Assembly (NCBI GenBank): GCA_021613535.1
Contig: CP075492.1
Location: forward strand, 2,852,001-2,916,000
Direction: 5' to 3'
Origin: Adineta vaga
Taxonomy: Eukaryota; Animalia; Rotifera
DNA: 64,000 bases
The position numbers and the translations under genes are program-made. The notes below the pieces were generated by a model, which searched no databases, was not told the origin of the DNA, and was given only the letters and a program-made list of their open reading frames with translations. This document shows, one piece after another, positions 42,760 to 49,249 of the stretch. Numbering within the stretch: the stretch's first letter is position 1; each line of letters begins with the position of its first letter.

Positions 42760-43681
42760 TCAATTGATTTTTTCGTGTAGTGATTTAAACGGTGGTATCC
42801 AATCAGGCTGAATGAGTTTCCCCGAATATTCGAAAGCGACAGATTTATCATCGTTTGGAATTAAATTTGGATTAATAGATCCATTGTTATGTAGATCAGC
42901 CTTGCGAATAACTTGTCTTATTTCAGTTAGAATATTTAATTCACGTAAATTCTTAAATTGATCATGTGAATTGAAAGCAATGGCTGGTGTAATGAATTGT
43001 CGAGCTTTACGTGAACTATTTGGATGTAGACCAACGATGAAAAAAGCACGTCCACCAATACTAAAACCTGTTTATCCACAAAGATGTTTGTCGATTAATA
43101 AAATCGATAAGATCATGCCATAATAATTCTGTTGTCTCTTTACTCGTTAATATATCATAAAAACCGAAATTAAACGCTTTTCGTCGAAAAATGATTTTTG
43201 CATTCAAACAGGGAAATTTTGTACTCAATATATACTGCCTAAATAGTTCTTTCATAATGGATTCTTCGTCAGAAGATATTGTCTTAGGTTCATTGCAATC
43301 TGGTACAACTCGATGTATCGAATTTGTCTTGAGGAAATAACCAAATTCTTCTGTTTTTAATCCATCACGAACAATTTTACCAATCCAACATTTACGATTT
43401 AAATATTGCTTGTGTTGATCTGATTTAAGATGCACTTCATGAAATATTCGAGTAACATCTCTACCTGCTAATTGCTTGAATATCTCAAGACCACCAGAAT
43501 GATTCTTCATCAATGCAAGACAATATACATCATCATCTATAATAATCCATCCATCATTTTTATGTTGTTCTACTTCGATGAGTGTGATCGTGCGATGAAA
43601 GAAACCAAGTCCAAGTATAAAACGAGACAGAAATCGTCGAAAAAGAGATAGAAACGATACCGTGAATACCAATAAAGGCAT
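42760..43681 (-). pseudogene. Cytochrome b5 domain fused to a YqcI/YcgG-family (GntA/DcsA-like) heme protein; frame break and apparent deletion near 43068
   Basis: b5 part: WIIIDDDVY...HSGG...AGRDVTRIFHEVH. YqcI/YcgG part: FRQYILSTKFPCLNAK...FGFY, then in another frame FSIGGRAFFIVGLHPNSSRKARQF..PAIAFNSHDQF...GSINP...EYSG...W.PPF. Confidence 0.78.
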
Positions 43682-44335
43682 CTTTTTTCGTGGCGAATCT
43701 AAATAACATACATGAATTGGTTGAGCTTGAAAAAATCTAAAAAAACATTTTATATAATGCACAAATTTCGTTTTATTTAGCGAATCTCATGTTTCGATGA
43801 GAATCTATTGAAAAAACGAAATCCTTTCAATTTTTTTTCTGTACTAAGAATGGGAGCTTAAGGTATGCAAATACTCATTGTAATCAATTCTTATCATACT
43901 TGTTAAGAGATAGCTCTAATCTTCTCTTTCTAAAATGTTTATCGAACTAAATGAAAGAACTTTTTTTCGGAGTAGCAATTAGATTCATATGGATTTATTC
44001 TATAAATAAAATAAAAAAAGTTTTTGAAGTTATTTCGCAATATAGATGTTTATTATTTCCTAAATGAGACATTCTGTTTTAAATGTTTCTTTTCTCGTTC
44101 TCTCTTAATTGTTTTTATTAGGGATTGAAGAAATAAAAGGCACTCAGCGGCTCTTTCATTCTTTCATGTTTCTGTATGTTATATTTTGTTTTTCATATGG
44201 TTGAGCATCGAAAGAAAGAAAATAAGAACGAGAAAAAGAGAGTACGAGATACATAATACAATTGAGTCCATACAATCAAAAACTTCAATAAAATGCTTGG
44301 TGTTGTTGTGGATGTATATTTATTTAAAACTCAAA

Positions 44336-45814
44336 TTACACGTACAAACTAATATAATCATCAATGTCAGTTGATTCAAATCCTGGTTGTGATTGCTCAA
44401 GTATCTTCTGCACTCTTTGTCCGTCAAATCTTCCACGAAGATGCTGCTCAAATTTAGCCATAAGTAGTGGTTTTCCTTCTTCACGACGTTTTCTATGTCC
44501 AATTGGATAATTTACTTCGACTTCATCTAGTTCTGTGCCATCGTTGAGAGTAATTCTGAGTGCATTACCAATATAGCGCTTATTGGGATCATGATATTCT
44601 CGTGTGAAACGAGTATCTTCCACACAGGTAATTTTCGTACGCATATCATCGATTCGTGGATCGGAAGCAATGGCATCTGTGTAGTCGTCGGTGGTCAAGC
44701 GGCCGTAGATGAGCGGTATGGCTGCGATGTATTGAATGCAATGATCACGATCAGCAAAGTTGTAGAGTGGACCAGATTTATCAATGATACGCATTGCAGC
44801 TTCTTGGGTACGAATACGAACGGATTTAATATCTTCAGGAACATTTACTCCTTTATCTTTAAGCAAGTTATGACAGATCATGGCAGCTTCAGCAACAGTT
44901 TGTGCATGAAACTCGGCTGGATAAGAGATTTTAAATAGTACATTTTCCATCACATACGATCCAAATTCTCGTTGAAGCTTAAATTCTTGTCCTCGAAAAT
45001 GCACGTCATAGAAACCCCAAGTATTAGCAGTCAAAGCAGATGGTATACCACTTTCACCTTTTTGAACCAATAATGCCAAATTTACAGCACGCATGCAGGC
45101 ATCACCAGCTGCCCAGGATTTTCGTGACATAGTGTTAGGTGCATGTCGGTACGTGCGAAGACTTTGCCCATCGATCCATGCATGTGAAATAGCATCTATT
45201 GTTTGTGATTCAGTCAAACCTAGAAGTTTAGATACGACTGCGGTCGTAGCTACTTTTACCAATACGACATGATCTAAGCCTACTCGATTAAATGAATTTT
45301 CCAAAGCAAGTACACCTTGGATTTCATGAGCCTTGATCATCGCTTCAAGAATATCCTGAACCTTGAATACTTTTGCACCTTTGGGTTTATCTATGGCACT
45401 GGATGAAGATGAACAGGAATACTTAGCAGTTTGAGTTAAATAATCAGTCACTGCCAATATACCTCCAAGATTATCGCTTGGATGTCCCCATTCAGCTGCA
45501 AGCCAACAGTCATTGTAATCCAACCATCGAATCTGCGTACCAATACTAAATGCTGCTCTAACAGGATCTAGAACATGATTTGTACCCAGAACTCGTGCTC
45601 CATTAGGAATCGTAGCTCCAGGTACGACTGGACCGATTAATCGAGTACATTGTGGATGTTTGAGTGCTTCTAAGCCACATCCAAGTGTGTCGAGAAAGCA
45701 TAATCTCGCAGTATCAAAAGCGAGCGAAGATGTAATAGTATAGTTGTGTACATAAGATGCAATGTCTCGAAGTATCTTATCGACGATTGGGCGCACATTC
45801 TGTATTTTATTCAT
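44336..45814 (-). CDS. prpD: 2-methylcitrate dehydratase, intronless, 492 aa
   Basis: DTLGCGLEAL, RWLDYNDCWLAAEWGHPSDNLG, LRTYRHAPNTMSRKSWAAGDA, FKISYPAEFHAQT, ADRDHCIQY, YPIGH. Confidence 0.96.
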   Translation of the reverse strand: MNKIQNVRPIVDKILRDIASYVHNYTITSSLAFDTARLCFLDTLGCGLEALKHPQCTRLIGPVVPGATIPNGARVLGTNHVLDPVRAAFSIGTQIRWLDYNDCWLAAEWGHPSDNLGGILAVTDYLTQTAKYSCSSSSSAIDKPKGAKVFKVQDILEAMIKAHEIQGVLALENSFNRVGLDHVVLVKVATTAVVSKLLGLTESQTIDAISHAWIDGQSLRTYRHAPNTMSRKSWAAGDACMRAVNLALLVQKGESGIPSALTANTWGFYDVHFRGQEFKLQREFGSYVMENVLFKISYPAEFHAQTVAEAAMICHNLLKDKGVNVPEDIKSVRIRTQEAAMRIIDKSGPLYNFADRDHCIQYIAAIPLIYGRLTTDDYTDAIASDPRIDDMRTKITCVEDTRFTREYHDPNKRYIGNALRITLNDGTELDEVEVNYPIGHRKRREEGKPLLMAKFEQHLRGRFDGQRVQKILEQSQPGFESTDIDDYISLYV

Positions 45815-45974
45815 AGTATATCTAAAAGGTATGCAATTTATATTTATTCAAATTATTCAAACATTACGTAACAATAAACCATCCAGTTATTATTGTTTAT
45901 TTTTATCATTTTTTTACAATAGAAAGTTCAACGTTTTTGTTCTTGAGTTTACTGCACATTCCTTCTGACTAAGT

Positions 45975-47474
45975 TCATTTTTTGAATTGATCAGCTTCTG
46001 TAGATTCAGAAAACGCAGTTGTGCTTCCTTCTCCTCCTAAATTTTACTGCTAAAAGTGACTTAATATTTAGTCTTTAACGTTATTTTACCTGTTATAGCC
46101 ATGTTCACCAAATCGAAATATCCAGTTCCAACTTCTCTTTGATGTCGAATTGCTGTATAACCATGCTTTTCAGCTTCGAATTCTGCCTGTTGCAACTCTG
46201 AATAGGCAGTCATTCCACGATCCTTGTAATTCCGTGCAAGTTCATACATCGCATAGTTCAATGAATGAAATCCGGCAAGTGCAATCAATTGAAGTTTATA
46301 ACCCATTGCTCCGAGTTCCACGTGAAATCTTGCAATTGCTTCTGGGCTCAAATTTGCTTGCCAATTGAACGAAGGAGAACAATTGTATGTCAACAATTTT
46401 TCAGGGAACTCCTTTTGTATTGCCTCTGCGAATTTCTTCGCTTGTTCTAAATTTGGTGTTGATGTTTCCCACCAAAGTAGATCTGCAAATGGTGCTGAGT
46501 TGAGACTTCTTTTGATGCAATGTTTAAGACCAGTTCCACTTTTTAGTCGAAAAAATCCTTCGGAAGTTCGACCAGCTGTCATATCAATGAATTCTCTATC
46601 TCGTTCATCGATATCTGAAGTCAATAGTTTCGCTGATTCGGCATCTGTTCGACTGACAATTATGGTTGGTACGCCACAAACATCTGCTGCCAAACGAGCA
46701 GCATGTAAATTTCGTAGATGAGTACTACTTGCGATCAAAACCTGAAATTGTTTTTGTTTTTTTTTGAACGATGAAATGCTTATTTTTCTTACCTTTCCAC
46801 CTAAATGACCACATTTCTTCTCCGATGCTAATTGATCCTCAAAATGAATTCCAGCCGCTCCAGCTTCAATAAAAGCTTTCGTGATTTCAAAACAATTCAA
46901 TGGGCCACCGAATCCAGCTTCAGCATCGGCAACAATTGGAACAAACCAATCACGTTTTCTTCCACCTTCAGATTGTTCAATTTGTGAAGCACGCTCTAGG
47001 GCTTTGTTGATTCGACGAACCATTTCTGGTCCAGAATTTGATGGATATAAACTTTGATCTGGATACATTGATCCAGCTGTATTTCCATCTGCTGCAACTT
47101 GCCAACCTAAACATACATTCAATATTTTTCTTGAATAGAAAAAAACGAAGAGATTTACCTGACATATGAATGGCGCGTAAACCAGCACGAACCATTTGCA
47201 TTGCTTGATTTCCTGTGACAGCCCCTAGTGCTTGAATATATGGTTCCGTATGTAACAAGTTCCATAATTTGTTCGCACCGAGTGTCTAAAAAGTGAGTCA
47301 CTTTTTCTACCATTAAATTGAACAAGATATCTTCAAATTACTTACCGCTAAAGTGTATTCAATTTGGATGGTACTGCGCAATCGATGTACTACATCAGGT
47401 GCATAAATCCTTTGAATTCCATTCCAGCGACCTTTGGGTGCAGTTCGCACCAGTTCATAGAAAACTTTATTCAT
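45975..47474 (-). CDS. aceA: Short bacterial-type isocitrate lyase family enzyme, possibly acting as a methylisocitrate lyase; exons 47474-47346, 47285-47159, 47106-46793, 46741-46090, 46036-45975
   Basis: [19 protein letters not shown]..., [83 protein letters not shown]. All four introns are GT-AG and keep the frame. Confidence 0.95.
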
Positions 47475-49249
47475 TGTGTTATTTTTTTATATAACGAAGA
47501 GAAAGAGAACGAAACAATTCGATATCTTAAAAAAAGAAAGTTTCCACCTATCAAATCACTTTTTCAATGAAACATACTTCTGAGTCGAAAATTTTAGAAT
47601 ATTCTACCTACTAATATATGTGTCTGTGACAAAATCTCAACTGCAAATATCGGCATTTGATGTTTTGGTATGTATTCTATCATAGACCAAATTTTCAATA
47701 AAATACCTATAACTTTGCGCAAATAATCTAAGGGCATTTCTGATGTTCATATTCGGTATCAACACAGTTAATAGCCCATAGTATGTTTCATTGAAAAAGT
47801 GGTTTGATAGTTTGGAAGATATTTTAGTGAGTTTATTTGTTTAAAACAATAACATTTTCTTTGTTAGGTATATTAATACTATTTATAATTGTGGTATGAA
47901 GTGATCAATTTTCGATAATATCAAATGACAGAGAATTCCATGAGCTCTCGAAATACATATTTGGTTTTGAATCACTCATTTCTATATTTACATTATTTCC
48001 GTTCAGTAAACTGTACAATAAACATTCTCAATATGATAGAATCATAAAACAGTATAGTAATTGGATAGAATAGCAAGCTAATAGAACGACAAAGACAGTT
48101 ATTCTGACTTTGAATTAACAAAGAAAAAGCGATGTCGCCAGAGATCGATATCCTTTTTTCGTAATTTATGAACTCTATCACGGTGCCATAAATTATATGA
48201 AATAACAATTAATAATATAGATAATAAAAGGTAGAACTTCATATTCAAGAAATCTAACAGAAAAAATGATTTATTGAGTATACCTTGATTTAAAGTAGAA
48301 GATATGATCGATTGACTACCTCATCAATTGGAGATCGATTACAATTATAAGTAGAATTTTGACACGATATGAATCTATCATCCATAAACAAGATCATATC
48401 TTCATTATAATTCATTAATATATTCGTTTATATGAAAGAGAACACATGCTCAATAACACAGAATAAGTGAGTAACAAAAACTCGTTTACATCAGTATATA
48501 TTATATATTCTTCAGTGATGATATATACGTATACATAAACATATATATCGAGAGATATATAACGTTTTCAGTTGCATCTCTATATCTAATCTGTGTAATA
48601 AAATGACCCTAAATGGTTGGAGTCTAGCCTTTACAGTTATAGTATTTGTTAATTTTTATATATATTCCAATGATATTTCATCATTTATTTAAAAGAAAAT
48701 GAATATAAGAACTCAAATAGAAACAGGTATGTGTCGAATTCGAAATCAACTTGATCTACTTTACTTTTCTGTTCACTTTGGAGATAAATTACTATATAGA
48801 AGTAATTAATTATTAAACTGATATTGTCTGTCTTGTTTATTCCTATTTAATTTTTCAATTTAGATTAATATCTTTGAAAGGAAATGCGTTTTAAAATCTC
48901 CAAAATTTACCAATACAATTAACTTCTATACTGACAGCATTTTAAGCCTAAGAAATTGAATGAATCCTTATTTAGAACATAAAGATATTATTTAAAGATA
49001 GTGTACCATTTTCTAATAGCAATATTACGCCCTAAAAGTCGAAATAGATAAAAGATAGAATGTTTAATGCTTTGTTTCAGTTATTCTTTAAAAAACAGTC
49101 TACAATTTCTAATTCTGATAAGATCGAAATTAAATTATCATGCATTTTATTTTCATAGGAAATCTTTGTAGATTATTTTAAAGGTTTTTTTTTCATAGAA
49201 AGATGTTAACAAGAATATATTGATCTATTATATATATTAAAGTGAAAAA

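Follow-up and report, generated by a model that had tools for sequence, protein, structure and literature searches.

A transcribed prpD-lyase gene pair of separate foreign ancestries in a bdelloid rotifer, with a predicted role in 2-methylcitrate breakdown

In a 64-kb window of an Adineta-type bdelloid rotifer genome (C3:2852001-2916000; coordinates below are positions in this window unless a contig is named), we identified a genuine, transcribed two-gene unit on a bdelloid chromosome, in which an intron-containing gene of the isocitrate lyase (ICL) family lies upstream of an intronless prpD, the gene for 2-methylcitrate dehydratase. PrpD and methylisocitrate lyase act in the microbial 2-methylcitrate (propionate) pathway, which animals normally lack. 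The pair appears to supply two steps of the methylcitrate route that are missing from animals; it would do so without a dedicated entry enzyme, and the vitamin B12-dependent route coexists with it.

Structure of the gene pair

Both genes were modelled on the minus strand. Residues of the lyase are numbered after E. coli aceA, which was aligned to the lyases.

47346..47474, minus strand: lyase exon 1; start codon 47474-47472; an RNA contig extends to 47481
47159..47285, minus strand: lyase exon 2; codon of the Y89H change at 47168-47166 in the AIHMSG motif; splice joints in RNA
46793..47106, minus strand: lyase exon 3; catalytic KKCGH loop; V-to-I change at 46849-46847 in GIHFEDQ; splice joints in RNA
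46090..46741, minus strand: lyase exon 4; NCSPSFNW motif; Leu at 46288-46286 (E. coli F349) and Ala at 46282-46280 (T351); splice joints in RNA
45975..46036, minus strand: lyase exon 5; stop codon 45977-45975; splice joint 46036/46090 in RNA-type runs X8, X13 and X17
45815..45974, minus strand: spacer of 160 nt from the lyase stop to the prpD ATG
44336..45814, minus strand: prpD, an intronless single open frame of 492 aa, stop included in the span

The coding sequence of the lyase comprises five exons with 427 codons plus the stop, and its four introns (60, 52, 51 and 53 nt) are all GT-AG. With 45975 as the last base of the lyase stop and 45814 as the first of the prpD ATG, the genes are 160 nt apart. 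A sequence-only reading of this DNA had placed an intron-containing lyase ending at 45975 and an intronless prpD starting at 45814 on the same strand; its coordinates, strand and quoted peptides proved correct, with PNTMSRKSWAAGDAC present in PrpD and the 13-residue N-terminal peptide in lyase exon 1. No malate synthase domain was found in the window lyase, and prpD is single-copy in this genome.

The pair is expressed and integrated in the host genome

The interval 44200-47600 was compared with three RNA-type runs (X8, X13 and X17) and one DNA run. Contigs from all three RNA-type runs skipped the four modelled lyase introns exactly (CT..AC on the plus strand), and no intron-skipping joint was present in the DNA run. 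Both genes are transcribed, since the coverage of run X8 was limited to the two genes, with prpD covered by one 1389-nt contig (44391-45779).

The best matches of both genes are non-animal, as they would be if the locus were a contaminant or an assembly chimera, and the sequence-only reading had named read coverage as a check for this. The DNA run showed an even depth of 163-230 across the locus, with two alleles, and the spliceosomal introns of the lyase are removed in RNA. The codon usage of prpD is AT-rich and host-like, with a GC content at third codon positions (GC3) of 0.28; an independent assembly, from A. ricciae, contains the same pair; the stretch is present in sequencing runs of nine studies; and the neighbours in the window, which belongs to a 100.8-Mb genome of six contigs, are eukaryotic (a multi-exon P-type ATPase gene, kelch genes, NHL repeat genes and a cytochrome b5 fusion). 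Contamination or chimerism was therefore ruled out on the spliced RNA contigs, the even DNA depth, the two alleles and the independent assemblies, and we assign it a practically negligible probability. Together, non-metazoan placement, spliced introns, GC3, eukaryotic flanks and even depth mark the pair as horizontally acquired and host-integrated.

The two alleles in the DNA run differed at 5/117 positions over 45814-45930, in the spacer; at 47534, just upstream of the lyase, a variant with an insertion of 24 nt was seen. Directly downstream of prpD, an open reading frame on the minus strand (43061-43762) encodes a cytochrome b5 domain and the start of a YqcI/YcgG domain.

PrpD is nested among budding yeasts

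The window PrpD is a full-length equivalog match with both MmgE/PrpD domains: it scored above the NCBIfam cut-offs of NF006943 (753.7 bits; cut-off 575) and TIGR02330 (711.9; cut-off 458), and matched PF03972 (N-terminal MmgE/PrpD, 311.6 bits) and PF19305 (C-terminal, 193.5 bits). Its closest relative is the A. ricciae protein, with 84% identity, and Saccharomycotina follow directly after the rotifer-type proteins at 72-74%. Two rotifer-type clusters headed the best 120 database matches, and all other named matches were fungal, with Saccharomycotina leading. The best bacterial PrpDs, among 599 loci, reached 59-64%.

Two trees were built, one with 57 taxa (tree 1: C20-PMSF, quick search, SH-like approximate likelihood-ratio test, SH-aLRT) and one with 42 taxa (tree 2: LG+F+G4, SH-aLRT/ultrafast bootstrap, UFBoot). 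The file of tree 2 is rooted on the window sequence, which shifts the labels by one node, and its supports were read one node up the re-rooted path. The supports were as follows.

Three rotifer PrpDs: tree 1, 100; tree 2, 100/100
Rotifers with Tortispora as sister: tree 1, 91; tree 2, 95.3/94
Rotifers with Saccharomycotina: tree 1, 99; tree 2, 99.8/100
Rotifers with Ascomycota: tree 1, 97; tree 2, 97.5/99
Fungi and rotifers against bacteria: tree 1, 100; tree 2, root branch

As PrpD is nested inside Saccharomycotina in both trees, the donor was a Saccharomycotina-like budding yeast. The suggestion of a fungal-like PrpD, which had been made from a short motif, is thus borne out by both identities and trees.

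The rotifer protein shares 72-74% full-length identity and the same two Pfam domains with fungal Pdh1/McdA (Tortispora caseinolytica, Sugiyamaella Pdh1p). It differs from these in being encoded on an animal chromosome with a GC3 of 0.28, and in having no N-terminal extension, so that a mitochondrial location is not evident. Compared with bacterial PrpD (E. coli prp operon), it passes both equivalog cut-offs and has 59-64% identity to betaproteobacterial and Bacteroidota PrpD, but it lies outside any prpBCDE operon, with no prpC or prpB found in the genome. An exact-protein look-up returned no record for the window PrpD, a scan of JGI metagenomes gave no further rotifer-type PrpD (top match 66% identical), and no Rotaria PrpD was among the best 120 database matches.

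The lyase is a bacterial-type ICL duplicated within rotifers

The open frame 46061-47188, running through exon 3, intron 3 (which is in frame) and exon 4, served as the lyase query in database searches. The gene belongs to the isocitrate lyase family, with 249.6 bits to PF00463 and 410.2 to TIGR01346 (cut-off 275.9, exon 3-4 frame), and the catalytic K-K-C-G-H loop is present; NF011645 gave 537.8 against a cut-off of 562 with this query lacking exons 1, 2 and 5. The best solved relatives were the short isocitrate lyases of Brucella (PDB 3E5B/3EOL, E 7e-147), and the top database matches were Rotaria ICLs at ~80%, then Alphaproteobacteria (Pedomonas, Sphingomonadales) at ~73%. The lyase is therefore of the short bacterial type without a malate synthase fusion, as the sequence-only reading had proposed. 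With alphaproteobacterial AceA (Brucella) it shares the short ~430-aa architecture, ~73% identity, the KKCGH loop and NCSPSFNW; it differs in its four spliceosomal introns and in F349L, T351A, Y89H and the V-to-I change, at positions that do not vary among the bacterial enzymes.

Just two ICL loci were found in the genome, the window gene and C5:3843347-3845100. The contig-5 ICL directly precedes a malate synthase gene, and in Rotaria sordida the two are joined in a single gene model (P0128). On contig 5 (C5:3843347-3846722) the malate synthase gene contains introns and lies within ~0.8 kb of the ICL on the same strand, forming a glyoxylate-cycle pair. Two further malate-synthase-family genes (C2:2959546-2960286 and C5:14385134-14385874) have long uninterrupted frames of 537 and 517 aa; they probably derive from a foreign acquisition of their own, maintained as a pair on contigs 2 and 5.

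Lyase trees were built exon by exon: exon 3 contributed 104 aa, exon 4a 140 aa and exon 4b, for which a quick search with SH-aLRT support alone was run, 77 aa. In each tree all ten bdelloid ICLs grouped together to the exclusion of 38 alphaproteobacterial sequences, supported at 99/97 (exon 3), 100/97 (exon 4a) and 98 (exon 4b). The three prpD-linked lyases compared here (window, A. ricciae and one environmental contig) formed a subclade with 100/96 in exon 3 and 91 in exon 4b, and partially in exon 4a. The window and contig-5 lyases have introns at common positions, after EYTLA, MSG, HLGGK and ITG. A further intron, after AKFQ, is present in the contig-5, Rotaria and environmental prpD-linked copies and has been lost from both Adineta linked copies. 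Given the bdelloid ICL clade and the shared host intron positions, the window lyase is a rotifer-lineage duplicate and not a second import: it was duplicated within the rotifer lineage after host introns had been gained, its parent paralogue is the contig-5 ICL beside malate synthase, and the bdelloid ICL itself had come earlier from an alphaproteobacterium. The trees are compatible with a duplication either before or after the Adineta-Rotaria split. Like the window pair, this bdelloid ICL-malate synthase locus and the nematode ICL-malate synthase fusion are cases of foreign-derived genes, here of the glyoxylate cycle, kept next to each other in an animal; the contig-5 copy keeps F349/T351, whereas the window copy is paired with prpD and has a Leu/Ala (L/A) pocket.

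The shared strand and short spacer (160 nt; 75 nt in A. ricciae) are what would be expected had the pair been captured together from one donor, as an imported operon or a fungal cluster. The ancestries, however, differ: PrpD falls within Saccharomycotina, and the lyase, a short enzyme of alphaproteobacterial type, sits inside the bdelloid ICL clade and has host intron positions in common with the malate-synthase-linked copy. Moreover, the methylisocitrate lyases of fungi are relatives of the fungal ICLs (PMC10534831); the fungal ICLs in PDB belong to the long class (538-563 aa), and their match to the query is far weaker than that of the short bacterial enzymes. With trees and shared introns both against it, a captured donor operon was rejected, and we regard a single donor as very improbable. 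Two different donors had been predicted on family patterns, with phylogenies of both proteins named as the check, and the trees gave these separate ancestries, with PrpD in Saccharomycotina and the lyase nearest Alphaproteobacteria. The accompanying proposal that the cluster was assembled in the host also agrees with the trees and shared introns, with the refinement that the lyase at this locus is a host duplicate and was not itself imported there.

Active-site changes in the prpD-linked lyases

The positions aligned to E. coli F349 and T351 are Leu and Ala in 3/3 prpD-linked lyases. Both the contig-5 and the Rotaria lyases read F and T there, and F-x-T was found in 119 of the 120 best database matches. 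Only 4/321 columns showed a residue that all three linked copies had and none of 45 others did; three of these four columns are invariant elsewhere, namely the V-to-I change in GVHFEDQ, F349L and T351A. A fifth change of the linked copies, Y89H, falls within exon 2; 117/119 database matches have Tyr at this site.

These two positions have been linked to substrate choice. Fungal methylisocitrate lyases carry Leu and Ser there (review PMC10534831, summarising Muller et al. 2011), a fungal ICL becomes a 2-methylisocitrate lyase when F is changed to L and T to S (Muller et al. 2011, cited in PMC10534831), and E. coli ICL with F349L/T351P is like a 2-methylisocitrate lyase in both catalytic efficiency and characteristics (PMC10534831). 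The F-to-L change is also reported to abolish ICL activity (PMC10534831), which makes a plain ICL role for the window lyase unlikely. The window lyase thus lacks the Phe349 and Thr351 of a canonical isocitrate lyase and half matches the rule for methylisocitrate lyases, with the Leu at 349 present but Ala instead of Ser/Pro at 351. After the duplication, the prpD-linked copy thus acquired substitutions (F349L, T351A) at both active-site positions by which isocitrate and 2-methylisocitrate are told apart.

Fungal Mcl1/Icl2 offers a parallel, in that an ICL was duplicated and the same two active-site positions were changed, with an identical F-to-L substitution (PMC10534831). The rotifer lyase differs as an independent event on a short bacterial-type ICL backbone in an animal, with Ala and not Ser at the second position and with physical linkage to prpD. 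Bacterial PrpB belongs to the same phosphoenolpyruvate (PEP) mutase superfamily and presumably catalyses the same reaction; the lyase nevertheless matched it weakly, over ~50 residues (E 1e-5 to 1e-7), and scored 49.9 against the prpB equivalog cut-off of 354.

Conserved linkage and purifying selection

A. ricciae carries the same tandem pair on the same strand with a 75-nt gap, and two independently assembled environmental contigs have the genes adjacent but convergent, ~1.07 kb apart. When the 21-kb A. ricciae locus was compared with the whole window by tblastx, homology was found only over the gene pair, reaching ~35 nt upstream of the prpD ATG. Because the adjacency recurs in A. ricciae and in the environmental contigs while the Adineta flanks differ, it is not due to chance. 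No PrpD was found beside the Rotaria ICLs at the R. socialis and R. magnacalcarata loci. Synteny across bdelloids, put forward in the sequence-only reading as a check, thus upheld the linkage in A. ricciae and the environmental contigs, as distinct from these two Rotaria loci.

Pairwise Nei-Gojobori ratios of nonsynonymous to synonymous substitution rates (dN/dS) were 0.08-0.09 for PrpD and 0.03-0.12 between linked lyases, dS being close to 1 or higher. Purifying selection acts on both genes, and these values at such dS indicate that both have long been kept functional.

The A. ricciae pair is flanked by two multicopper-oxidase genes upstream and a urea-transporter gene downstream, with no counterparts in the window. 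The environmental contigs (ENA metagenome, 4.3 kb) come from a bdelloid-like organism and carry PrpD and an L/A-type lyase tail to tail; its GC3 is much higher (0.46 versus 0.19-0.28), and its lyase keeps the intron lost from the Adineta copies.

The rest of the propionate pathway and the proposed function

We searched the genome for the other enzymes of the route. The citrate synthase family was represented by one eukaryote-type locus (C2:10278930-10280520), with no bacterial type. Aconitase-family loci, identified by family membership, were present at C2:4.48 Mb, C5:12.92 Mb and C2:11.40 Mb. PrpB was not found in the genome. A strong PEP_mutase match on contig 2, the only other PEP-mutase-family gene, was considered as PrpB and rejected as a PEP mutase equivalog. 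This gene (C2:1855283-1855933) scored 341.5 against the equivalog cut-off of 319.55, PEP mutase being the first enzyme of phosphonate synthesis, and an upstream exon encodes an N-terminal extension.

The data document how the two genes are built, transcribed and spliced, where they came from, the paralogy of the lyase, its residue changes, the selection on both genes and their linkage; the enzyme activities and the physiological role are predictions. We consider it probable, with some reserve, that the pair provides a B12-independent salvage or detoxification route for 2-methylcitrate derived from propionyl-CoA. PrpD would dehydrate 2-methylcitrate to 2-methyl-cis-aconitate, a host aconitase would rehydrate this to 2-methylisocitrate, and the L/A lyase would cleave the product to pyruvate and succinate. 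The 2-methylcitrate itself would presumably arise as a side product of the single host citrate synthase.

Several points weigh against this proposal. Genome searches with PF00285 and TIGR01793, which give lower bounds, found no 2-methylcitrate synthase, and for want of this dedicated enzyme the methylcitrate cycle is incomplete here. The genome has kept methylmalonyl-CoA mutase, so the canonical propionate route exists, and loss of the B12 route as a motive for the acquisition is accordingly not supported. Position 351 is Ala, versus Ser in fungal and Pro in bacterial methylisocitrate lyases, and no report of T351A mutagenesis was found in the literature; Y89H could point to another substrate. 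Neither window protein has an N-terminal extension or a C-terminal peroxisomal tripeptide. Of the earlier description of a methylcitrate-cycle cluster, the PrpD equivalog, the L/A lyase and the aconitases stand, while the cycle itself is incomplete, no dedicated 2-methylcitrate synthase having been found; the search for partner genes that it had called for likewise recovered aconitases but no methylcitrate synthase.

Some of these points would also fit two neighbours without a shared pathway, the lyase being a glyoxylate-cycle ICL or acting on another 2-oxoacid-lyase substrate and PrpD working alone, for example as a minor aconitase-like dehydratase. This is possible, although we lean clearly against it. 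The missing methylcitrate synthase, the Ala at 351 and the additional Y89H change speak for uncoupled genes, as does the annotation of E. coli-type PrpD in NF006943 as a bifunctional 2-methylcitrate dehydratase/aconitate hydratase. Against them, the substitutions hit two experimentally defined specificity sites that are F/T in 119/120 other matches, the adjacency has been kept in three lineages despite different flanks, and F-to-L is reported to abolish ICL function (PMC10534831).

A possible operon-like arrangement

The spacer contains the following sequence elements.

45901-45896 and 45848-45843, minus strand: two AATAAA hexamers within the spacer
45822..45828, minus strand: CTTTTAG, acceptor-like, 7 nt upstream of the prpD ATG, with identical motif and spacing in A. 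ricciae

The lyase RNA contigs terminated at 45888 and 45821, each shortly 3' of an AATAAA hexamer. The X17 contig end at 45821 was considered as read-through and set aside, lying 22 nt after AATAAA, where it may be a poly(A) site. No acceptor-like CTTTTAG site was found before the lyase's own ATG. Rotifers are listed as having trans-splicing and operonic transcription (PMC12460157), and CTTTTAG before prpD is a possible spliced-leader (SL) acceptor, which would make co-transcription of the pair with trans-splicing possible. Two features point in this direction, the 75-nt spacer of A. ricciae and, in the window, the poly(A)-proximal lyase contig end abutting CTTTTAG. In its fullest version this proposal is speculative, and we hold it to be rather doubtful as a whole: the Adineta lineage would have turned a yeast gene and a modified duplicate of a bacterial gene into a functioning B12-independent route for disposing of 2-methylcitrate; methylisocitrate lyase would have arisen from the ICL scaffold independently once more, alongside the fungal case, again with F349L and again with a change at T351; and the two genes would form an operon-like unit in which prpD would be expressed from the lyase transcript by SL trans-splicing at CTTTTAG.

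Discussion

Horizontal gene transfer (HGT) into bdelloids is well known. To our knowledge, it has rarely been documented that an animal joins genes of different foreign origin into a linked module and re-engineers one of them by duplication and active-site change. Our literature searches returned no paper linking bdelloids with methylcitrate enzymes, and the Boschetti 2012 supplements hold no methylcitrate or ICL entry. In the literature searched, an A. vaga ICL is mentioned only in a spaceflight study, among the differentially expressed genes (PMC12220480). Bdelloid HGT and the evolution of methylisocitrate lyase from ICL by duplication are thus already known kinds of event; what is new here is that the host is an animal, that the ancestry is part fungal and part bacterial, that residues changed convergently on a scaffold of bacterial type, and that the physical pairing of the genes has been conserved.

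The lyase offers a clean natural experiment in convergent enzyme evolution, as the ICL duplication together with F349L and the change at T351 parallels both the fungal enzymes and the prediction from mutagenesis. The predicted capacity, handling of propionyl-CoA or 2-methylcitrate without vitamin B12, would be unusual for animals. This animal thus seems to have built part of the microbial propionate pathway from foreign genes.

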